Part shown: positions 187 through 64,000 of the stretch, piece by piece
Numbering within the stretch: position 1 is the first letter of the stretch
Layout of the letters: each line of letters starts with the position of its first letter
DNA from: Ramazzottius varieornatus
Lineage: Eukaryota > Animalia > Tardigrada
Direction: 5' to 3'
NCBI GenBank assembly: GCA_001949185.1
Contig: BDGG01000003.1
Location: 783,577 to 847,576 of the forward strand
Length of the DNA stretch: 64,000 bases
Program-made: the position numbers and the translations under genes
The notes under the pieces: model-generated
What the model saw: only the letters and a program-made list of their open reading frames with translations
The model's database searches: none
What the model was told of the DNA's origin: nothing

Positions 187-763
187 CACTGAGCCCCATA
201 ATCATCTGTCCACACCCATTTTTGTTCCCGGAGCGTCATTTTATTCATAACTTATCTTGCACTAACCCGATTCTGATATCTTGGACGTCTCTTTGGAGGT
301 CAGTGTTTGACCTTTACGACCACGTGACTTCCGCATGAATCAATCAGCAAATCAGCTGGCAGTATCCTCCCTACAAACACCTAAAACTGCCTTGTTTTCG
401 ACTCCGAGCTGCGGGTGCTAGCCAGCAGATAGCACATCATGCTTGTTACTATTATGTGGCCCCAACATTAAGCTTTCAATTAAGCCCATTTCAAAAACTT
501 TTGCAGATATGCAGAGAAAGCTGTGTTGTCGTGTCAACCAGGAAGTATTGTCGGTTATTTTCGGTGGTGCATATTCACGACGCCTTTCGCACCCAGAAGG
601 TGAAAATATATGGGACGAAGTCTGAGAACTTATGAAGCCTCGCAAGGGAATTAGGTTAAAACGTGAAGAGCCCACCTTTGAGAGAGGCGCACTAGCTTAA
701 TGGATATTGAGAGGGTAGCGGATCGGTCTCATCGGAAGATCGTCTGATTGATTGCCAGTACTA

Positions 764-894
764 TTCCCTCGAAAGTTCTGCTCATTCACATGACAGGCCT
801 CTAAAATAACCCCCGAGCCTTGCTGACCAAACCACGATCACCCGGGGCCTGATTTATGGGGCTGTCATGTGACTGTGCAGAACTTTCGAGGGAA
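764..894. mobile_element. ~130 bp MITE with ~34 bp terminal inverted repeats
   Basis: ttccctcgaaagttctgctcattcacatgacag pairs with ctgtcatgtgactgtgcagaactttcgagggaa. Related degenerate copies occur near 29035-29150 and 54505-54572. Confidence 0.75.
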
Positions 895-939
895 CACAGC
901 ACTTCCAAACTGATTTATTTGTGGAAGACCATTCCAAAT

Positions 940-1625
940 CGTCACCACCGTTTACTCCGTACACCACTTTCTAATTAAGGTCCACCACCCGAGACTTCGA
1001 ACACCACTTTTTGCCAGATCGGTTTTTATTACTTAGTTTCAGAGAAGAAAGTTAGATCACGCTTCTATCGTAATTACAGGCGGCAAGAGGTGTTTTTCAA
1101 CAGCGGGATCTTTAGGATCGTGAGTTTTTCCTGTTCTCCGAACTTGCCACAACACGAACTTAGGACGAACTTATGGCGAACTTATGGCGCTGGGTGTCGC
1201 GAAACGAATCGGTGTCTTTCAACGTCTCACTTCTTTTGACGTTGAAAGTTGTAAATGTCCGCTTGTAAAGTCCGCGAGAACTTCTTCAAAAGCCTCATAG
1301 GTGGAGAATTCGGCTCCTTGATGGAATACATTTTTGTCATGGCTACAATCACAGTCAGAACTGCTCCCACAACTTCTTCCAGTACTACTAGACATTTCTT
1401 GTTGAGATACTTCAAGCTAAAGATTAAGTCCAAAGTGGTGAGTGTCCGGAAACCAATGCTCATTTGTAACCGCCTTCACGCATCTCTTAGAAACAAAAGT
1501 GGTGCGCGGAGAGTTTGAATTGTAATTGAGTAACGGTGGTGAACGAAAGGTGGTACGCCCAGACAAACGGTGGTGAAAGGTGGTGTGCGGAGACAATGGT
1601 GGTTCTCGCTGGTGTGCGGAGCACT
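940..1625. mobile_element. degenerate element with inverted subterminal repeats
   Basis: Clustered caccac motifs (tcaccaccgttt, tccgtacaccacttt) at 940-1012 are mirrored by gtggtg motifs (aaacggtggtga, aaaggtggtgtgcgga) at 1495-1620. No clear TSD. Confidence 0.4.
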
Positions 1626-1976
1626 TCCCTTAAACAAACTCTTTAGTCTGTGTTCGATCAATTACTCCACTTGATCATACCGTTTACAGTCATAGGAAAA
1701 TTTTCTCACAAAAGCTCAATTTGTTGATGTCTAAATTTGGATGGAAAACCCAGATTTTGTGAAATGCAATAGACGGAGAAATGGGACGGAAAACACCCCA
1801 GCTCACCTTACGATCAAGGAGAGCGGCAAACTCTGCTTGGGCAAGGTGCAAAAAAGTGCACGGTTGGTAAATTTTTACGATCTGTGAGAATCAAACATGA
1901 AGCCGTCTGGTTTCATCGTTACCACACTAGCCTTCCGGTCTGTGGAACAACTATACAGCGCTGACGCTTCGGTCGG

Positions 1977-40819: not shown

Positions 40820-43800
40820 ATGTCGTCGTTTACGCAGTTACTCCTGACGTTTTCTGTGATATGTCTGTTCCTCTGCAGTCCCTACTCTTCCTGTGGAACG
40901 CTGGCAGATTACCTGAAAGGTAACAAGGGGCTCTCTGTGGCCAGGGACAGGAGAGCTACCGACGAGAACATCTCACTTAACAACGCAACGCGCGTTGGTT
41001 CGGTTGGTGCATCGTATGGCTTTCTCGACAGAAATGTCTCTCTCAAATCTGTTGTGGTCGTTGGACCAGTTAACCCCACGGAAGCCGTAAATCAGATTCG
41101 GCTGAACGACGAGATAAGTAAGTTTTTGCTTCTTATCAGAAGACATCTTAGTTAACAGCAACAACTTTTCAAGATATTTGATTGACGATTGAACAGCGGA
41201 AGCGGAGCGGCATATCACATCAATGCAGCTGGTTTGCCGCTCCTACTCCGTTAGGCAACCAGGTTCGTATGGTTGATTGACGGTAATGTTTTTGACTTGA
41301 TTGACATCTTGGCTTGTCTTGCAGTTTGCTCAACGACGACTATCTCTTCCTTCGTGGAAAACTTTAAGGCTCTTCGCAACTGTACAGTCATTGAAGGACG
41401 ACTGATCATAGGACCCATCGACTTCCCAGAGAAGCCGTTTGAAGAGATATCGTTTCCGCATTTACGAGAGATCAACGATTACCTGCTGGTGTACCGTGTG
41501 ACAGGCCTGAGGACCCTCAGGAACCTCTTCCCTAACCTGGCTGTCATCCGGGGCAAACAGATGTTTAAGGGTAACTCCCTGGTCATCTTTGAGAATCCTG
41601 ATATGGAAGATCTAGGCTTGATCTCGCTGATGCATATTCAACGAGGTGGTGTGTGGATCACCAAGAATCCCGTCCTGTGCTACCTCGATACCCTCTCGTG
41701 GAAGAAGCTCCTAGGCGAAGAATGGGCCAAAGTCTACCATAAAGAAAATAGGCCCGAAGAACAGTGCGTTAACCAGTGTCCAGGAAACTGCAGGACATTC
41801 TACTCGACGAGCCATCAACGAGAACGCCACATGTGCTGGACCACCAACGACTGTCAGCAAGGTACGAAAACAGTCTTCGATTCAAATTCAGAATTACCAA
41901 GCGAACTGTGAAACATCACCGGGAATAGGTGTCGTGGTTATGGTACTATCCCGCGGTAGTTATGAACGGACCGCTGGTATAGAATGTCCAGCGGTCAGCG
42001 AGACGATGACGTCATCCGTTAGAGGGGTGGCAGTGTGACGTTCTGCGCGAGTCTAGCTGGTTAGTTGCGGTGTATTGGTTCCGGGTCTGAGCAGCTGAGG
42101 GTAGTGTCGGACCGACCATGTGGTACTTTTTTTCGGTTGCAAATGGTTGCATTGTGAGCCTTTCTGACCTTGTTCCTTCTTGTAGTGCCACTTCCAGCAT
42201 GCAATGCTGTCGATCAGAAACAGTGCTGTCATTCCCTGTGTATGAGCGGCTGTTTCGGCGGAGAACGTAATGAGTGTCTGGTGTGTAATAACGTGCACTA
42301 TAGTGGGGCCTGCTATCATTCGTGCCCGGCATTTACTTACGAGGTAAGCGTGGTCTATGGGGGTTTATGGCTTTATACTGGGATTGCCGGAGTATACTCC
42401 TGGGGAGAAGTGTCATTTGCCGCGAACATAAACTGATGAGTTATTTGTGTTGCAGGTTCGCGGACGACGCTGTGTGACGGAAGCTGTCTGTCGTAATTTC
42501 ACACTGGATGGATACGCGAGGGATTTTAAGGCCCACGAAGGACATTGTCGGAGAGAATGCCCGGCGAATTTCATGACGGACCCGTTGGATATTCACAGAT
42601 GCGTACCCTGCGCTGGACCCTGTCCGAAAAGTCAGTAGGAAAATATCAAAACAAATTCAGAAAAAGAACTGGTTAGAAACCGATAAATGTTCTGAAATTA
42701 AATGTTGTATTTTTCTTTAGCTTGCAAAACAGCAACGGTGACGACGGTCGATACGGCGGAAAGGTTGAGACAGTGCACGATCATCAACGGGAGCTTGGAA
42801 ATCCAGATTGGCAAAGGAGGTACGACCGTTACGCTCATTGGAGCTTTTTCTCGTGTGTCATCATGGCTTGTTCGCCTACTCGAGCGTCAAAGACTGTAAT
42901 CAGAGGATGATGCGTGGGGCTGATTTCTTTTCTTCTCTGATTACAGAACAAATTATCGCAACGCTGGAGCAGACCCTGCAGAACATCGAGCACGTTACGG
43001 ATTACATCAAGATTATCCGCTCGCACGCCCTTCTTTCCCTCAGCTTTTTTAAACGTCTCCGTTTCATCGGAGGAGTCAACACCGCACCTGGAGGCTACGT
43101 AAGTAAACGTTGCTGTCCGTTCTCTCTGCGGAAAATAACGAGAAATATAACATAATAGGACTTGGACTGAACAAACTCTTCAGGATCTTGTTTCCAAGTG
43201 GCGCATCTTTCGAGCCAAAAACAGTGTTACCGTGCGCCGCTTGGAAAACAGTCTCGCCGTGGTTCCAATTCGTTCAAAATAAAATGAACATATCTTTCTT
43301 TTTGTAGGCTTTGATGGTGATTGACAACCAGAATCTGCAAGACCTCTTCGATTTCACTGCCGAGCGTCCGACCCTGCAGATCGGTAACGCATCAGCCAAA
43401 GTAGCCTTTCACTTTAACCCGCGATTGTGTCTGGGCAAAATCGACGTCTTGATGAATCAAATCTCCGCGGCGCTGAACACGACCTACGATCCGCGGGACA
43501 TTTCCACAACGTCCAACGGTGATCGTGTGGCTTGTGACATCAGCCTCTTGAATCTGATCGTCGGCGAAAGAGGCTCGGAAGTGGTAAATCAAGTCGGAAA
43601 AGACGGCCAGAATTTTGAAGAGAACAAATGATCCGAATTTCATTCGTGATTTCGGCTCTTGTGTATGTACAATTTTGTGTTTTCGCAGGTCATATTGACG
43701 TGGGATGTCTTCGAGATGCCCGATCCAAGATCCCTATTGGGCTACGTTCTATACTACCGCGAGTCACCGGTCCGTAACCTGTCCAAGTACGAAGGCCGAG

Positions 43801-51280: not shown

Positions 51281-52647
51281 CTACTTTGTTATCTTGACGT
51301 TGATGTTGAAAACAAGTCCGTCAAATTTCTTTCCCGGATAGTGCTGAATCACTCTGCCGTTCAGGGGTTGTAATGGTCGATAGTTATCACCTTCTCCCGC
51401 CACATCATCGGTTTCCCGTAATTTCCGGAAGGCGGCCAGTTGACGTTCTGTAATCTTCTGAGGGCGGTCCATCACGCTCCACTCGACTGCTTCGGCACAC
51501 GGTGGCGTGGTCAGCGATCCCAGGTAGCGGTAGTAGGCAGACGATGGTGGCAGCAACTCCGCCAGTGTCAAATGAGGTAGCGTAACGTTGACAGGCTTAC
51601 CTACAGGGCAACAGCATATAAAACTGAAACGAGCAGGCTAACTTTTCCAGAAAAAAAGTCTACTCACCCGGGTCGACGACTTGGCTCAGAGTATTGACTG
51701 TTGAATACATATGCTTATGCGCTTGATCCTTCTCGCTGGTCAGCTCAAACAGAATGCCCACCACGGCCATGCCGGTGGACTCCGCTTGTGCTTGCGCGTC
51801 GTTCTTATCCAGCTTTCGGTGTACGATGTGAAGCTGTGCAAAGACTTTCGTTCGTCACTGTATAAGGCTGATTCGAAGCACGATATATTTTTTTGTTTTG
51901 AAACGTTGAACGTACCTCCAGAGGATATCTTTTGCCGTTAATGACGTGTTCGGAGCCACGCGAATCAGTGTTGCCCCAGTGGCAGGGGAACTGAGCAAAG
52001 GTGTAGGCAGAAGGAAGCCCGCCTTTTCGGACAAATGGCAAGTGATTGGGATCAAAAAGCCCACTGAATTGTACTGCAGACCAAAGTAACTCTTCTTAAC
52101 CGTACAATATCATACAGCAGCATCTGTGCCGCTTGAAGTCTAAACTGGTGCAAGGGCATCTACTCTTTGGACTTTTGCCTGCTCTGCACTGTACCGAGAC
52201 ACTGTAGGGTTTCAAAGTAACCTACCTGAATGTCCGTTGTTGATTACGGTCCACCTGTTATCCTTTGGGTGAGCTGCGTGCGATTGAAACTGGAGCGGTC
52301 CCAGCTGTGGAGAATGCCCGACCTGCGCGGTGTCAATCGCTATGGGCGACTGGCGAGCTCCTTTACATGCTGGAAAGTCTCTTTCCCATTCTTGTGGTGG
52401 ATACTCTAAAATGCCCAAAACACCGGCATGATACTAACGAGCAGAACACGTTGATGTCACAAACTGCTCTTACTGTAAATAGCGGAGGGCTGACGCCATC
52501 TTACCATCGGTATTCTGTTCGTAACCCCGATGGCCGTGACGACCAGAACTGTTCGTAGGAGCAACGACCCTAGAAATTCCGTGGTGTCTAACTACATATC
52601 CGTAAGGTGATCGTCCAATACAAAGCATACTCAAAATTCACAGAGCG
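51281..52647 (-). CDS. alpha-carbonic anhydrase paralog 1, His94 replaced (acatalytic or incipient pseudogene)
   Basis: Motifs W..DFPACKGARQSPI, NNGHS, QFPCHWG..GSEH, E|LHIVH, YYRYLGSLTTPPCAEAVEW and DNYRPLQPLNGR. The presumed first exon appears to contain a TGA, so the 5' end is uncertain. Confidence 0.75.
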
Positions 52648-53080
52648 TGTTGAGGTACTCCAGTCATATTGATAGTTAAGAGGTTGTTTCAGTGCGACCG
52701 TAGCGAATGTATTTCAGCATATAGTATTCAAATTTAAATCTCCTATGAGAAGGGTTTTAGACCTGTCTTAGAAATATTACTACAGAGCTGTCGTACAGAA
52801 GTCGGCTTGACCGCTGCGATGAGACGACTATCACAAATGTTTACTACGTAGAGTTGCTAAGTTTACTATTGGTCGCTCTTGAAGGAATAGCCGCGAATTG
52901 ACGTTAGTCTGAACGATCTAGTGATCCTAATCGACTACATTCCCCAAAAGTTACTGTAGTAATGTGGGTGAGCTCTGACGATGAGCGCACGTGAAACCAA
53001 AACATACTGAACAACGAACTCTCTCAACCGCTATGAGACTTGAAACGTTAAAAATTAATTTCGAAAACACAACAGTTACA

Positions 53081-56000
53081 TCACAGTAAGACCAAAGAGA
53101 AGGTTTCACCACATAAAAACAAAACCAGAAGCAAAGTTTTTTGGGCCCTCATCCGTTCGTAACCGGACTTCGGCTGAACAGGGACCGAGTAGTATTGAAC
53201 TTTTCTTCCGTTCAAAGGCTGTAAAGGTCGAAAGTTATCGCCGATATCTATTTCAGGAACTACAGCCTCTTTTTCCCGCAGTGTGTGAAAAAACTGCATC
53301 TGCTCTTCGGTGATCAACTGGGTCGTATCCAAGACTGTCCATTCCACGGCTTCGGCACAAGGTGGCGTCGTCAGCGAACCCAAGTACCGGTAGAAACCAC
53401 CGGCTGGCGGCAGCAGCTCTTCCAAAGTCAGCTGTTCTAGTGTGACATTGGCCGGTTTATCTGCATGATCAAAACCGTAAAGCCCTTGTCGACTACTGAA
53501 AACTTTAGTACCGTTTACTTGTATGAAGAGTAAGGTCTACGTTGCTCAGCCTGCAACTTGGCCGTCATACGTCATGTTCACGTCACAAAGCATAAGAGAC
53601 CTTCGCAGGGCTGGTGAGTGGTGACGTAGAGTGCAAAGTTGTGCGCTGAGCAAAGTAAAACTTTGCTCCTCGTACTAACTTGGAGACGTCACTTTACTGA
53701 TGGCCTGGATTACTGGCGCGATGTGCTTGTGAGCGTTGAATTGTTCAGTGGTAATATCGAATAGAATAGCGATGACAGCCAACCCGGTGGAATCGTTCTG
53801 AGCTTGAGCATCGCTTTCACCAACCTTTCGGTGCACCAGATGTAGCTGTAACGAAAAGCCGAGTTCAATTTCAGAAAGATGTTATCCAGCAGGATATGCA
53901 AGACCGTTTTGAACAAGCGGCGGGGAAGCGGGGTATGTTTTCTATATATCTCTTGCTGCTTGCACAATGTCGACAGTGCTTCGCGATGTATGGTGTTGAT
54001 TGATTGATGTACCACTGCTGCGTGGCCGTACTGTACCGAGATACCGTTCGAGGATAACAACTGAAGTTTTTTCTAACTCTGACGTGAGTATCAACTAACC
54101 AAAAATTTAACTTCCGAAAGAGCTTCGAAGACTGGTTATGGCGCTGGTGCGATAACAACTCGGTGCAGTTGGCTCCACCCACCCCTTTGAGGGTAAAGGG
54201 AGGGCCACAAGTGCGGCCCTCCCTTTATCCTCAAAATCATACTTATCACGACACTGCGCATGCGCAGTCGCTCACAGAAAATTGCACAGGACCGCGCACG
54301 AACATCGCGACAGGCGCTGCGCATCTATGACAATGAACTTGAGCTTCGAAAAGCATTGTGCAAGCGTCAGGGCCACAAAAATACGTCGAAAACCACAAAC
54401 AAAATGCCGTGACATATCACTGTTCTGCACCTATGAGAAATACGAGCAAGCGATATTTACATCAGTTAGCCACATGGCTTGTTGATATAAAAGTCAGTTA
54501 ATGCATTCACGCAGTCACATAACAGGCCCCTAAAGTAATCCCGGGGTTATGATGGTCCAGAGCCGTGCACAGGGTATCAGTAGTGCTGGGATACATACGA
54601 TAAAATACGATATACTATTTCCTGATAAATATCTTTCAATATTTATATTTCGTTTTAGATATCAACCACGTATCGATATTTCGATATGATACGTTTCTGA
54701 TATCTTATTTTTGATATATCGAATTTTATTGCAGTAATATATCGATATATCAAGCCAGTAACATGTTAAAAACTATCAAAATCAAGAAAGAGCCAGAGAG
54801 AAACCAAACGGCTGTCGTTCACTACGTTCGAGTCAGAACAAAAGTCAAATCTCTTCGTGAATGCGAGTGTGTTCGTTGCTCAATCTATCAAGGTCTGTCG
54901 TTACGCACCTAGTTACGCTGACTGTTCACTTCTCCGAAGTCAGCTTGGATGCATGTGTGCGATACATTACGGGCGAGGCTGCGCTGCCTGCGCGGTACCG
55001 AACCGGAGTATTGACTTCCGAAGTTCCGATTCTCAGGTGCGGGTTTGCGATTTATCGATACATCTCTGATATATCGATATACCGCGATATGATATTTTCA
55101 TTTATCATATTCCGCTCAGCGATATTCCGTCCATATCGATATTTCGATATGATATTTTTGTCATATCGAATCACTGTGATGTGATGTATTTCGATAAGGT
55201 ACGATATATCATATTTATCCCAGCACTAGGTATCAGGCAATATGTGGGCAGGATTAGGGCCCTCTGCTGGCATTGGAGGTCCTGTCAAGTCCTAACAATC
55301 AAATTGCCCGCTGATTGGATGCCACAAGACCACCATGCACGAGCAGATGGCGCTAACTCAAGAAAGAAAGACCAGGTCAAGAAAAGACGCTGGACGACGA
55401 GTTCACGGAGTGGGAACGACTCCGTCAGCTGTATTTCCCCAGGTCGTTTTAAGATCCAGGTGCGCATCCGCTCTGTTTTCGGTCGCACTCAGTCCAGTCC
55501 GTTGTCGATCGCGACGCGATCCGCATCGCTTTCAATCCGTTTCTTTTTCTTTGATTCTGCATGGTTTTTTCCGTCGAGACACGTTCGGACAAGTCCGCAA
55601 AAGTTTTGGCCAGGCCGGTAGCCTGTCGGCCAGCCATCGAATTTAGCTAAAGGTCTCTGACATGACTCATTGAGCCTCACTCTTGTTGCGGTGGGTTCAT
55701 TCGGTACTTTCTTTTACAACCGTTTACTCGAGAACGAACCGCGCATGTGGATCTCGAAAACGGTTAGCTGGATCGATGGAACGTTGCCTACAAACCCATG
55801 CTATCGAAATGGCCGAACAAGCTCAACTAAGATTTCAGGGAGATTTCAGTTTTGTCTGTTCGGCCACTTGCTACCATGGCGCGTTTAGAGACGCAATGCA
55901 TCATCAGTAGGCTCCGCCCTCTCCGAAAATTCGCAGTATCACCAGCGCAAGCTCTAGCCAGTCTGGTGACGCGTTGTTCGGTCTCTGGTGGAAAGTCGTT

Positions 56001-56930
56001 CGGGACGTGAGCCGGATCCGGTGCAATGCCCGTTGGTTCATGGGAATTCTGCCCACTACCCCCCTAATACTCTCTGCGCGGCTCTGCTCATGTTTGTAGT
56101 CGAACTATATTATCAGTAGGTACTCTACGTAGCATCGGTAGTGGCGGTATTGTTGACATTATGCTAAACAGAGTGGTGGAGCGCTTGAACATTCATACCT
56201 CCAGAGGATACAGCCTGTTGTTGATAATATGTTCAGAGCCACGTCCCAGCGAGTTTCCCCAGTGAAGATGAAACTGAGTGAAGACGTAGTCCGCCGATAG
56301 ACCGCCTTTGCCAACAGTCGGTTGCTGTTTCTGATCGAAAACTCCGCTAAACTGAACTGCAGACAATGCGATCCGTGTAAAGACTAGGAACCTCTCTGTG
56401 CTGGTATTTCACCTGTACCTGTATGGCCGTTGTTGACTACGGTCCATGTTTTGTCGTTAGGTTCTGAGCCATATGCTTGGAATTGCAGTGGCCCCATCTG
56501 AGGCGCTTCCTTCGCCTCAGCTCTGCTGAGGGCAATAGGTGACTGGCGCACGCCTTTGCACGCCGGGTAGTCGTTCCCCCAGTCCTGCGGCGGACTCTCT
56601 AGAAGATGCATGAATTCCTGAGTGGGATCTACTCATTTGATGTGGCCAAGTGTGCGTTACGCGGCTGCTGCTGCAAGGTCGGAAATGCTTCCCTACCCTT
56701 GGCCACGAGGCCTTATAGCATTGTTCGGTCGGTCGTCGGGTAATGTCACCACGGGTGGGGGACCATTATTGACAGGCATCACTGTAAGCTAGCTCTTATT
56801 CGTACCATCAGTATGATGTTGATATCCCCAATGGCGGGAGGGCTGCTGATGAGCGACTACCGTGCCACGAACTATCCGAACCCCGACCAAGGGAACCAAT
56901 AAGTAAAATAACCCAACATCCAAGCGCCAT
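53081..56930 (-). CDS. alpha-carbonic anhydrase paralog 2, signal peptide plus hydrophobic C-tail (CA IV-like, probably GPI-anchored)
   Basis: Motifs MALGCWVILLIG, DYPACKGVRQSPI, NNGHT, QFHLHWG..GSEH, E|LHLVH, FYRYLGSLTTPPCAEAVEW, DNFRPLQPLNGR, and tail KTLLLVLFLCGETFSLVLL. A ~2.3 kb intron lies at ~53849-56198. The 5' exons are not fully resolved. Confidence 0.85.
54581..55228. mobile_element. non-autonomous hAT element with 8-bp TSD
   Basis: TIRs tagtgctgggatacatacgata / tatcatatttatcccagcacta. Perfect TSD ggtatcag at 54573-54580 and 55229-55236. Dense cgatat subterminal repeats at both ends. Confidence 0.9.
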
Positions 56931-60279: not shown

Positions 60280-63200
60280 CTAGACGAACATTATCAAGGT
60301 TACAAAAAAGGCAAGGATAAAAGGCAGTGTGGCTTGTGAAATGCAGTTAGTGGCAGAGGATGTCTTGGGACTGTAGTGCATGTTGATGAGGTCTTTGGCA
60401 TCTTGTGTGAAGCAGGCTTCGTAGTTGCCGGTGGGCGTGGTCCACGCACCATTTGCACCACAAGTTCGGCTGACAGTTCCTGCGAGATTAAGAACGTTCG
60501 ACGTGGTACACGGGCCTGGCCTAAATGTNNNNNNNNNNNNNNNNNNNNNNNNNNNNNNNNNNNNNNNNNNNNNNNNNNAGGCCAGGCACATGTACCGAAA
60601 GACCTCCACCATCCACGTAGACTTACTTGTGGTATCCAGGCACATGTGTGGAGGACACGGTTGTGCGGTGGTTTTGTCCTTGGGCGTGGTCGGCCAGCAG
60701 ATCTTCCCATCCGTTCCGCCCCGACACGATCCAGCTGCGGAGAAGAAACTTGTCAGTCATCTCGACTGAACGAAAAGCTAGTTCGAATCGCCTTTACCTT
60801 CGCCTTCCCATTGAGCAATCTCTTTCAAGAAGGTTTCGCAACCTGCGGGAGTGCTCTGCTGCCACGGTTGTTTCGGTGTGTCCCGTCCTGCACCATTGGC
60901 GATCTGAGCCATGGTGGATCCGGCGCTGGAGTCTGTGGTCACTTCGGTAGTAGCCATCAACGTGGTTTCCCGGAGGTTGAGTACAACACCCGAGCCAGCC
61001 AGACCGGCGATGTGGATGTCGTTGCTAGGCTGGCTGGGTGTGACCACGGCCACTTGCAGGAGCCCACAAGCCGAGAGGTCGGTGTGACCGACGAGGTGCG
61101 TAGCGCCATCGGCAGCCGTCGTGTTCCATTCACCGCTGATGCTACATTGACGTGTGGCTGCGGGAACGTGCTGGCTGTCTTCACCGGGTACCAGTGCACG
61201 GCATGGCTGGCGCGCAACATAACCTGGGGGAGAAGCCGGCCAGCAGAAACGGCCGTCGGATGTACCGGGACACCCTGCACCTGAAAAACAGAGGGACCTT
61301 CAAGCTTCGTTAAAACATGCCAGCACAAGTGTGTCTCCCTTTTTCTGATTTAACTATCATCTCAGGTGACGACATGGCTTCGTTGATGTCGGGGTGTGCC
61401 AGTCAAAATGTCGATAGTGTGCGTCCTGTTAGCCCAGCTTTCAACTGTGATCCGCCTCTAATCTGTTAGTTGTTGCCATTTAGAGCTACTTTTCTACGGA
61501 ACATTGACGTACCGTCTCGAGTGTTGTCCAAGTTGTGGCTGTGCAAAAAGTCTCGGCACTGTGTGCCATCAGCAATTAGCCATGGTCGAGGAGGAATATC
61601 TTTCCCAATCACATTCCAGTCCTGGTTTTCACCGTTTGACGAAACAACCGTGGTTGTTACCATGTCATCGCCGTTACCGTTACCATTACCGGTGTACGCC
61701 GGTTGGCTGGGCGCCGTAACGTACGAATACAATAGTGTACTCTGCTCAGGGTAAGCGACAGCTGGACCTGGTGTAGCATACATGACACCTGGGTAGCTGA
61801 TGTAATTTGGGACGTTGCCACCGGTGGACTGATAGTCCGAATGTCCATGTTTCTCGATGAACTGTGGCAACTGGTAGCAGTCGTCGTAGCTACTCTGGCG
61901 AATATCATTGTGTTGCAGGCGTTGATTGGCGAATGGGTAATCTCGCCATTGTCCGTTGACGCATTCCCTCTTGACGTAAACTGGCAAAGAGAACATTCAA
62001 TTATTTTTTAGTGGTTGATTGGATGAGCAATTATTTTCAGCGACAGTGACAGTTACATCACAGGCCACAAATGTTTTACCATGTTGCGGAAAATATCATG
62101 TAATCATTACGTTGGAAGTAGACTAGCTTACAGAAGGAAAATGAGTGAACCACGACGTACTTTGACTTTGACGAGGAACATCGGGACAGACTTGGAGGAT
62201 GGTTTCTCCAGGGTCCGCTGAACGCCAGCACAAGATTCCGTCGAAGACAGGCGGGCATGACAGCGCTGAAAATAGAACCGTACAGTCAGATACAGTACCA
62301 CCTCCCAGCTGAAATTCCACACAGCCAGAAACCGTATCGTTCGTTGAGCGAAATGAGAACCACATTTCAGGCAAACGTTTGACACTTCCAGGTTTTCCCC
62401 CGCTGTTCTGTACACCAGCGGAGCTTCGCACCTTTGTTTCAAGAAGATATCGTGGTAAACTTTTGGCAGTTCAATATCGAACTTCACCTTTTCGTTACAC
62501 GAATAGCGAGTTCGGCACACAGACTAGGCAAAATCGTTCCCCTAAGTGACGCACGCTTCCAACCAATAACACAGAATAGGTGCGCCATTTGGGAAAACAC
62601 TCTTGTTACGTTTATTTGCGGTTTCCTCAATCCATGAAGCCAGAAAAGCTTGAATCAAGAAATCAATTACCATAGAACAGCCCCAGTTTCGTATGTTTCT
62701 TTGCATGCGTTCTTGTTGAAAACCCCCGCAAACGTCCGTGACATCGTAGTCATGAACAGTTATTTGGAAGAACTATCTCGACTTACGGTGGTCACTGTGT
62801 TCGTTCCGTCCTTTGCCCTTCAAGCGTCTCAAGAAATTCAAACACCTTTCCTCCGAAGTAAATTTGAACGTAGCCTGGACAGAAGTCTTGGTAGGGATAT
62901 CCTCGTAGCCCTGATTATACTGTGGCGGAGGTTGTTCATAAGGATCTTGACCCGGTGCGGCGTACACTGGTTGAGTGTACTGCACCGGATACTCGGCTTG
63001 ACGGCGGGCTTCCTCTTCCTCGTACTGTCTTTTCCGCTCCTCATGTTGCCTCACAGCTTCCTCATAGGCTCGACGAAGATCATCGTCGCTCTCCGCTTGT
63101 CTTTCACCCTCATGGTCTCCTTGGTGCTGATCATGTTCGGAAGCCGTTTGATTGCGGTACAGAGCGCGGCGGTGTTCTTCATCGTCAGTGCTCTCATGGG

Positions 63201-63453
63201 CTTCGTCTTCGGTGTGAGGTTCGTCGGTCGTGTCGGGTTCGTCAGTGGTCTCCGACTCTACTGTTTCGTGGTCCGTGTCGGTCGAGTTGTTGCTGTCGGT
63301 CAAATTGTCGAGAGAGTCAACGGGGACTTCGGTGAAATCAGTCAGTTCGGTGGTATTCACCGCTTTGTCGGGGTCGTTACTGAGGGTGGCGTTAGCCTCG
63401 TCGGTGTCGTTCGTTGATATATCCGTAACATTCAACAAATCTGAAGGCTGCTC
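60280..63453 (-). CDS. 5'-partial protein with three class-B (secretin-family) GPCR hormone-binding HRM domains, no 7TM, hydrophobic C-terminal tail
   Basis: Phase-consistent exons 63453-62787, 62265-62161, 61980-61513, 61280-60798, 60734-60627 and 60479-60280. They encode three repeats of C..C-x3-xDG-xx-CW..C..R-x-C-x2/3-G-x-W..C and end in LPFILAFFVTLIMFV-stop. Confidence 0.8.
60529..60578. other. assembly gap (50 N)
   Basis: Run of N inside the predicted last intron of the HRM gene. Confidence 0.99.
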
Positions 63454-64000
63454 CTGCAATTAGACAGAGAGTATAAACGATGCTAAGTGATGCCAAATTG
63501 TAGGGAAATGCCAATATGCCTTCGAAGGCTCTAGCAGATCACAGGGCATTGCCAATTGGCAAAGGATTTCACCCAGATCTTCATCTCAATTGGCGCACGC
63601 TTTCAGTGTTAGCGGCTGAGAGCTTGCGCTACTTGGAGAAATACTCTTGCCGGCTTGGGTTCTTTCCCAAGTGGCGCACGTTTCGATTTTAATAACCGAC
63701 AGCGTGCGCCACTTGGAGAGCTGATGTCGGCAGGTTTGTCTGCCTAGGTCACATTAGACTGCACAAAGAACGTAGAATAACAACTAATTAAGGAAATCGA
63801 CTGCCTGAGTTTTTCTAAAAACCCAGCAATGAACCAAGATGTAATAGTTGTCTTCGGATAACTGTAAAGTGATTATATTTTCTGAGGATATTCTACACGC
63901 AAAAATTTTGATGAATGGTTTATTTTAGTATTTTGCTACGGAATTTAGGGTGATGCCTTCTAAAGTCCATCATGGTGGTTAATACAATATCAGAACCGAC

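Follow-up and report, generated by a model that had tools for sequence, protein, structure and literature searches.

The extracellular domain of a class B1 G protein-coupled receptor (GPCR) captures the C-terminal helix of the peptide ligand. The question raised by the locus described here is what becomes of such a domain when a gene carries three copies of it and no receptor core. The locus lies in a 64,000-nucleotide stretch of the genome of the tardigrade Ramazzottius varieornatus (contig BDGG01000003.1, positions 783,577 to 847,576 of the forward strand; G000:C3:783577-847576), hereafter the window, whose own numbering is used below unless a contig is named. On its minus strand, between 63453 and 60280, the original prediction had placed a gene for a protein with three secretin-family ectodomains (HRM), no seven-transmembrane (7TM) bundle, and a terminal hydrophobic stretch, and had proposed a glycosylphosphatidylinositol (GPI)-anchored peptide decoy or co-receptor. 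The architecture is confirmed as real: three tandem class B1 ectodomains, no seven-helix core, and a hydrophobic end with no tail behind it. Its best overall explanation, to which we give about an even chance, is a surface-displayed triple-HRM protein that binds B1-type neuropeptides without signaling.

A predicted seven-exon gene encodes three tandem HRM domains

Reading of the minus strand, combined with a scripted check of splice sites, yielded six exons within the window (A to F, 63453-60280) that join in frame and total 2031 nt, a number divisible by three. An AG acceptor after a pyrimidine tract was found in all six, the donors are GTAAGT, GTACGT, or GTAAAG, and every junction (A/B, B/C, C/D, D/E, and E/F) is in phase 1, which bears out the phase-compatible exon set first proposed. 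Junctions A/B, C/D, and D/E fall between the Cys of the N-terminal helix and the next Cys, so that the recurrent phase-1 intron claimed for the three copies is indeed present in each of them.

Exon A (62787-63453) encodes T/D/E-rich, E/R/Q-rich helix-like, and P/Q/Y-rich segments, followed by the N-terminal helix with Cys1 of HRM1 (62844-62842). The N half of HRM1, from Cys2 to Cys4, is encoded by exon B (62161-62265), and its C half (Cys5, and Cys6 at 61879-61877) by exon C (61513-61980), which continues through the P/Y/G-rich linker 1 into the helix with Cys1 of HRM2 (61558-61556). Exon D (60798-61280) provides HRM2 from Cys2 to Cys6 (to 61066) and, past the S/T-rich linker 2, the helix that opens HRM3 (Cys1 at 60840-60838). 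HRM3 is continued by exon E (60627-60734; N half, Cys2 to Cys4) and exon F (60280-60479), which holds its C half with Cys6 at 60414-60412, a 27-residue spacer, the hydrophobic tail, and the TAG stop at 60282-60280. Exon A has no Met and is directly preceded by an in-frame stop, and an upstream start exon is therefore required. The 3′ part of intron 1 fills the end of the window (63454-64000), and the search beyond it that the original prediction had recommended located, by reading, a candidate exon 1 on the same strand, 1.25 kb upstream (G000:C3:848361-848284, equivalent to window 64785-64708). This exon opens with ATG, comprises 26 codons with the n/h/c layout of a signal peptide, including a hydrophobic h-region, and ends at a GTAAGT donor in phase 0, which fits the phase-0 start of exon A. 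As predicted from these features, the gene is intact, with seven exons and a product of ~702 residues.

Scanned one by one against Pfam HRM (PF02793; gathering score, 26.2 bits), exons B, D, E, and F scored 34.5, 42.8, 26.8, and 17.6 bits, respectively, and a six-frame scan of the genome with the same model marked the same four places. Exon C carries the R-x-C..G-x-W..C motif, yet it gave no Pfam match of its own. Each of the three copies retains the six Cys in canonical order and the core of Asp, Trp of the CW pair, Pro, Arg, Gly, and Trp; HRM3 has two additional, nonconserved Cys. A phmmer search of PDB sequences retrieved class B1 ectodomains only (VPAC2, PTH1R, CTR, CLR, GIPR, CRFR, and GHRHR). 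The AlphaFold2 model of exon D, which covers HRM2 without its N-helix and was built on a 16-row alignment, reached a predicted local distance difference test score (pLDDT) of 84 to 93 at residues 1 to 55, and its linker part was disordered. Foldseek comparison of this HRM2 model with the PDB again returned only B1 ectodomains (GLP-1R, PTH1R, CLR, CTR, GCGR, GIPR, and CRFR2; probability 1.0), with ~69 aligned columns in the top alignments. Pfam matches, structure model, and cysteine/core pattern thus converge on the three secretin-family ectodomains that had been read from the sequence.

No seven-helix core accompanies the domains

All 55.8 Mb of the genome (200 contigs) were scanned in six frames for the 7TM core of these receptors, 7tm_2 (PF00002). 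Some 17 receptor loci were detected, none of them in the window or within ~190 kb of the ectodomain exons; the closest matches on the same contig lie ~195 kb and 1.2 Mb away. On the minus strand, hydrophobic segments do not cluster in the 10 kb downstream of the gene, where four isolated 19-mers of this kind were all that was found. The HRM domains are hence not followed by the 7tm_2 core that defines a class B1 GPCR. Nor does the protein combine HormR with GAIN/GPS and 7TM, as adhesion GPCRs do, since the exon-wise Pfam scan found HRM alone, without GAIN/GPS, EGF, Ig, or any further adhesion module, and no 7tm_2. The genome-wide scan, the hydrophobicity of the downstream DNA, and a stop that is conserved in a relative (see below) agree with the earlier claim that the 7TM is lacking.

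The remaining HRM matches above the Pfam cutoff lie nearly all just upstream of 7tm_2 exons. The exception is a 30.3-bit match on the minus strand of contig 2 (G000:C2:7416000-7425999; L002), which is accompanied by EGF-like, Ig-like, and CUB-like open reading frames (ORFs) and has no 7tm_2 nearby. This gene is probably an adhesion-type receptor with a 7TM that is divergent or lies farther away.

The domains and the C-terminal end are conserved in a second species

An exhaustive HMMER search with exon D of 1.84 billion cluster representatives (E < 0.001) returned nine matches, two of which (P0001 and P0002) resemble orthologues. P0001 is an uninterrupted ORF of 352 aa from a 2171-nt SRA-derived contig of an independent assembly. 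It has two HRM domains, has in common with the tardigrade gene the helix motif P-x-P-W..C..L and the layout after the last Cys, and is colinear with it over junctions C/D, D/E, and E/F; because it is uninterrupted at these three intron sites, P0001 most likely represents a transcript. Its final residue aligns with the final residue of the tardigrade protein, which indicates that both genes have kept the stop and the hydrophobic tail. Accordingly, the tail-less hydrophobic end at TAG 60280 stands as first described, and the suggested search of other proteomes for multi-HRM proteins lacking 7tm_2 has delivered one with two HRMs, the same end, and a hydrophobic tail. P0002 (154 aa) resembles what exon D would be in the genome of a third organism: it runs into an intron at the same point as exon D, and its last residues imply a G|GTAAG donor. 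The other matches were conventional B1 receptors with calcitonin-, CGRP-, PTH-, or PDF-receptor-like names; two tandem HRMs precede the 7TM in some of them.

In copy-to-copy scores, domain 1 of P0001 paired with HRM2 and domain 2 with HRM3, and this separate pairing dates the HRM2/HRM3 duplication before the species split. Identity between the tardigrade gene and P0001 is 46 to 54% in the HRM segments and 20 to 33% in the linkers and the spacer; judged from the alignment, this mosaic is the pattern expected from constraint on the domains. Word-indexed homologue searches with P0001 and P0002 recovered the queries themselves only, and the ESM Atlas contributed only weak HRM fragment clusters (score, 0.78). 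A single-sequence AlphaFold2 model of P0001 was too poor for use (mean pLDDT, 43.8).

A PDF-receptor-like gene is the probable source of the domains

To trace the three copies within the genome, we compared their exons with the ectodomain exons of twelve HRM-plus-7TM receptor loci. The PDF receptor was assigned to locus L011 (G000:C5:566100-569900, minus strand), which gave the top score of all loci in tblastn with the fly PDF receptor (227 bits). Its N-half exon scored 96, 85, and 80 (Smith-Waterman) against the N halves of HRM1 (exon B), HRM2, and HRM3, respectively. For HRM1, the PDF receptor was the best match, above HRM1's own sister copies (60 and 54); for HRM2 and HRM3, it was either best or tied with two other receptors. 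The residue before the conserved Asp is T in the PDF receptor, the sole receptor in the genome with this residue, S in HRM2, and T in HRM3. The replacement of the W of the WDG motif by F, S, and T had been taken as a sign of diverged specificities. This argument is weakened: T or S at that site is no evidence of divergence, because the tardigrade's own PDF receptor has T there.

The exon boundaries are also alike. The N-half exon of the PDF receptor starts one residue before Cys2 and ends 33 residues after it, both in phase 1, and the next exon begins five residues ahead of Cys5, a layout that matches exons E and F with the acceptor shifted by one codon (two residues before Cys2 in exon E versus one in the receptor). 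These similarities suggest that exon duplication in a receptor ectodomain, most likely that of a PDF-receptor-like gene, gave rise to the three domains; this assignment of the source is tentative because the compared exons are short.

The termini suggest export and display at the cell surface

Acidic residues abound in the N-terminal ~200 residues (58 D+E in 222), which contain eight N-x-S/T sequons and no hydrophobic segment. By composition, this region is probably disordered and open to heavy N-glycosylation. Its T/D/E-rich part was originally called a stalk, a role at odds with its N-terminal and hence membrane-distal position. At the other end, the last Cys is followed by 27 residues that include S-S-A (from 60360), with a 7-residue spacer from there to the tail. 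The tail itself consists of 16 hydrophobic residues (60330-60283; Kyte-Doolittle mean, 2.54), after which there are no cytoplasmic or charged residues. P0001 has a similar C-terminal layout, with N-S-A-A and then a 16-residue hydrophobic tail. Together with the predicted signal peptide, the succession of S-S-A, spacer, and tail corresponds to the textbook layout for GPI attachment, which makes a GPI anchor plausible.

A protein of the same composition could do without GPI, either as a freely secreted soluble peptide binder or as a type I membrane protein in which a shortened relic of the first transmembrane helix (TM1) serves as the anchor. The position of the tail is compatible with the latter form: it begins 26 to 28 residues past Cys6, within the TM1 spacing of B1 receptors (16 to 38 residues), and MAFFT aligns it with TM1. 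However, the tail has just 16 residues and ends the protein with nothing cytoplasmic or charged beyond it, and small residues occur at GPI-like spacing in both proteins (S-S-A in the tardigrade; N-S-A or S-A-A in P0001). Its similarity to TM1 of the PDF receptor was no better than that of shuffled sequences, and the tail was accordingly rejected as a TM1 relic despite its fitting position. We consider a GPI-free form of either kind unlikely.

Proposed peptide binding is favored over adhesion or artifact

If surface display is accepted, the domains may serve peptide binding or something else. Adhesion is the assumed role of HormR domains in adhesion GPCRs, and the same protein could use its HRMs for protein-protein or matrix adhesion, with the acidic glycosylated N terminus as a mucin-like surface coat. 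The long, acidic, sequon-rich N-terminal region and the low-complexity linkers would suit such a coat, and the EGF/Ig/HRM gene on contig 2 indicates that an adhesion-type gene with this domain is present in the same genome. Against this, the sequence and structure matches are all to peptide-binding B1 ectodomains, none to an adhesion-GPCR HormR; adhesion modules such as GAIN/GPS, EGF, or Ig are absent beside the domains; and the nearest relative within the genome is the PDF receptor. An adhesive role is thus improbable, although it deserves about as much weight as a GPI-free form.

The locus contains an assembly gap (Ns at 60529-60578), which lies within intron E/F (60480-60626). It is bracketed by inverted-repeat arms at 60505-60522 and 60579-60596, of 18 nt each and complementary at 16 of 18 positions; the gap is the loop of an intronic hairpin, which probably caused it. 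The third domain is completed across the phase-1 junction of the flanking exons E and F, and this junction aligns without an indel to the uninterrupted ORF of P0001 (E35 to residue 287 and F2 to residue 290), so that no coding sequence is hidden in the gap. That the locus is a misassembled or mismodeled B1 receptor with a hidden or lost 7TM, or a decaying PDF receptor pseudogene, is very improbable: it could appeal to the gap and to a GTATGT hexamer 10 nt past the stop, but the gap is intronic between exons colinear with P0001, P0001 keeps the stop position, no 7tm_2 exons are nearby, every copy (3/3) retains its six Cys and the D/W/P/R/G/W core over seven exons, and the domains are better conserved than the linkers.

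The explanation that we favor, neuropeptide binding at the surface without signaling, can be put as a sequence of steps. Ectodomain exons of a PDF-receptor-like gene would have been duplicated, at least copies 2 and 3 being separate before the species split. The product would be displayed on the outer membrane leaflet, most likely via a GPI anchor at S-S-A. Each HRM would then capture a B1-type neuropeptide by its C-terminal amphipathic helix, with PDF as the first candidate and DH31 or DH44 as the alternatives, and the bound peptide would be buffered, cleared, concentrated, or presented to true receptors, with no signal from the binder itself. Peptide binding, the identity of the ligand, and the direction of the effect are plausible by analogy with the role of the HRM in B1 receptors. 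The fully specified version, in which a dedicated gene encodes a GPI-anchored trap or co-receptor with three binding sites for neuropeptides of the PDF or another B1 type, is possible but doubtful.

Several points weigh against this proposal. P0001 does not extend to HRM1, and conservation is seen for the counterparts of HRM2 and HRM3. With 16 hydrophobic residues, the tail might also hold the protein weakly in the membrane. The assignment to the PDF receptor was made on exons of ~35 residues, and two other receptors nearly equal its score for HRM2 and HRM3. Finally, to our knowledge no hormone is known to bind the HormR domain of an adhesion GPCR, and the HRM fold is therefore no proof of peptide binding.

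Candidate ligands are encoded in the same genome

A degenerate pattern for the tardigrade PDF core matched on contig 1 (plus strand) and contig 20 (minus strand). The contig-1 gene (Rv-pdf-1) consists of exons of 111 and 147 bp separated by an intron of 211 bp. These two sites and the receptor on contig 5 agree with the published Rv-pdf-1, Rv-pdf-2, and Rv-pdfr; the same study reported that tardigrade PDFs act as hormones and described an Epac-BRET cAMP assay for tardigrade PDF and its receptor (PMC11879619). A cofolding run of P0001 residues 48 to 318 with residues 17 to 46 of the Rv-PDF-1 exon gave no answer (score, 0.02) and counts neither for nor against binding.

At a distance of 6.5 kb from Rv-pdf-2, contig 20 also holds a third gene for a PDF-like precursor (G000:C20:191503-191537, minus strand; locus L020, ORF 1476-1661, minus strand). 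Its features are a dibasic site, a PDF-like peptide of 18 residues, a Gly amidation signal, and an upstream signal-peptide exon like that of Rv-pdf-2; only two pdf genes were reported for R. varieornatus (PMC11879619). Two CRF/DH44-like precursor genes, with Pfam CRF scores of 33.7 and 29.6 bits, were found on G000:C13 (L003, ORF 625-1635, plus strand) and G000:C9 (L004), respectively, and encode further candidate ligands. Genome scans with the Pfam models for PDH and calcitonin peptides gave no match, these models being too short for such scans.

Genomic surroundings of the triple-HRM gene

Immediately downstream of the gene, on the same strand, several ORFs at 51281-56611 resemble exons of alpha-carbonic anhydrase genes arranged in tandem. 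The window is further marked by a palindromic unit composed of CCAAGTGGCGCACG and its own reverse complement ~22 nt apart, of which it contains 10 copies against 0.34 expected. Three of these lie inside introns of the triple-HRM gene (62542-62592, 63586-63636, and 63667-63716), and other sites are at 43194-43244, 35498, and 45036. A unit that by eye is similar to this palindrome occurs in an intron of the PDF receptor gene.

Relation to known receptors and significance

Among known proteins, the ectodomain of Rv-pdfr is the closest in the genome. It shares with the triple-HRM protein the HRM fold, the best exon similarity, T/S before the Asp, and phase-1 introns placed alike, but the receptor joins one HRM to seven helices and a cytoplasmic tail, whereas the protein described here has three HRMs, a long acidic N terminus, and a 16-residue hydrophobic end. 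A class B1 ectodomain without transmembrane helices is also found in sCRFR2alpha, a soluble splice variant of CRF receptor 2 proposed to act as a ligand-sequestering decoy (PMC5930453). That variant is a single-domain soluble isoform, whereas the tardigrade protein is the product of a separate gene, has three domains and an anchor-like tail, and is conserved between species.

Tandem duplication of the ectodomain has precedents in some B1 receptors of arthropods, with annotations as PDF or calcitonin receptors and two HRMs before the 7TM: P0009/P0010 from Condylostylus longicornis (P0010 being PDF receptor isoform X1, XP_055374844.1) and P0003, P0004 (Limulus). These two-HRM invertebrate receptors differ in that the 7tm_2 core is kept wherever the sequence is complete. 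Outside the family, NPR-C is a clearance receptor, and GFRalpha and CNTFRalpha are GPI-linked co-receptors; as far as is generally known, they too keep a ligand-binding ectodomain and lack the signaling part, with clearance or presentation as the outcome. Their folds and ligands are unrelated to those considered here, and the analogy is functional only.

In our searches, no published equivalent came to light for a separate, conserved gene that combines three HRMs with an anchor-like tail and lacks a 7TM. The architecture had been called unfamiliar at the outset, and this judgment stands for the triple HRM without a 7TM; it does not extend to the fold or to tandem HRMs as such, which are already known, the latter ahead of the 7TM in invertebrate B1 receptors. 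The ectodomain-only B1 forms that we found described are splice by-products such as sCRFR2alpha.

Should the proposed function hold, the gene would encode a natural multivalent peptide trap or presenter and would add a new extracellular layer of control to tardigrade neuropeptide signaling. It would also be a case in which a receptor was turned into a nonsignaling binder by exon duplication and loss of the core. The triple-HRM protein represents a compact scaffold for peptide-binding modules and, if it acts as proposed, may help to explain the range and duration of the hormonally acting tardigrade PDFs.

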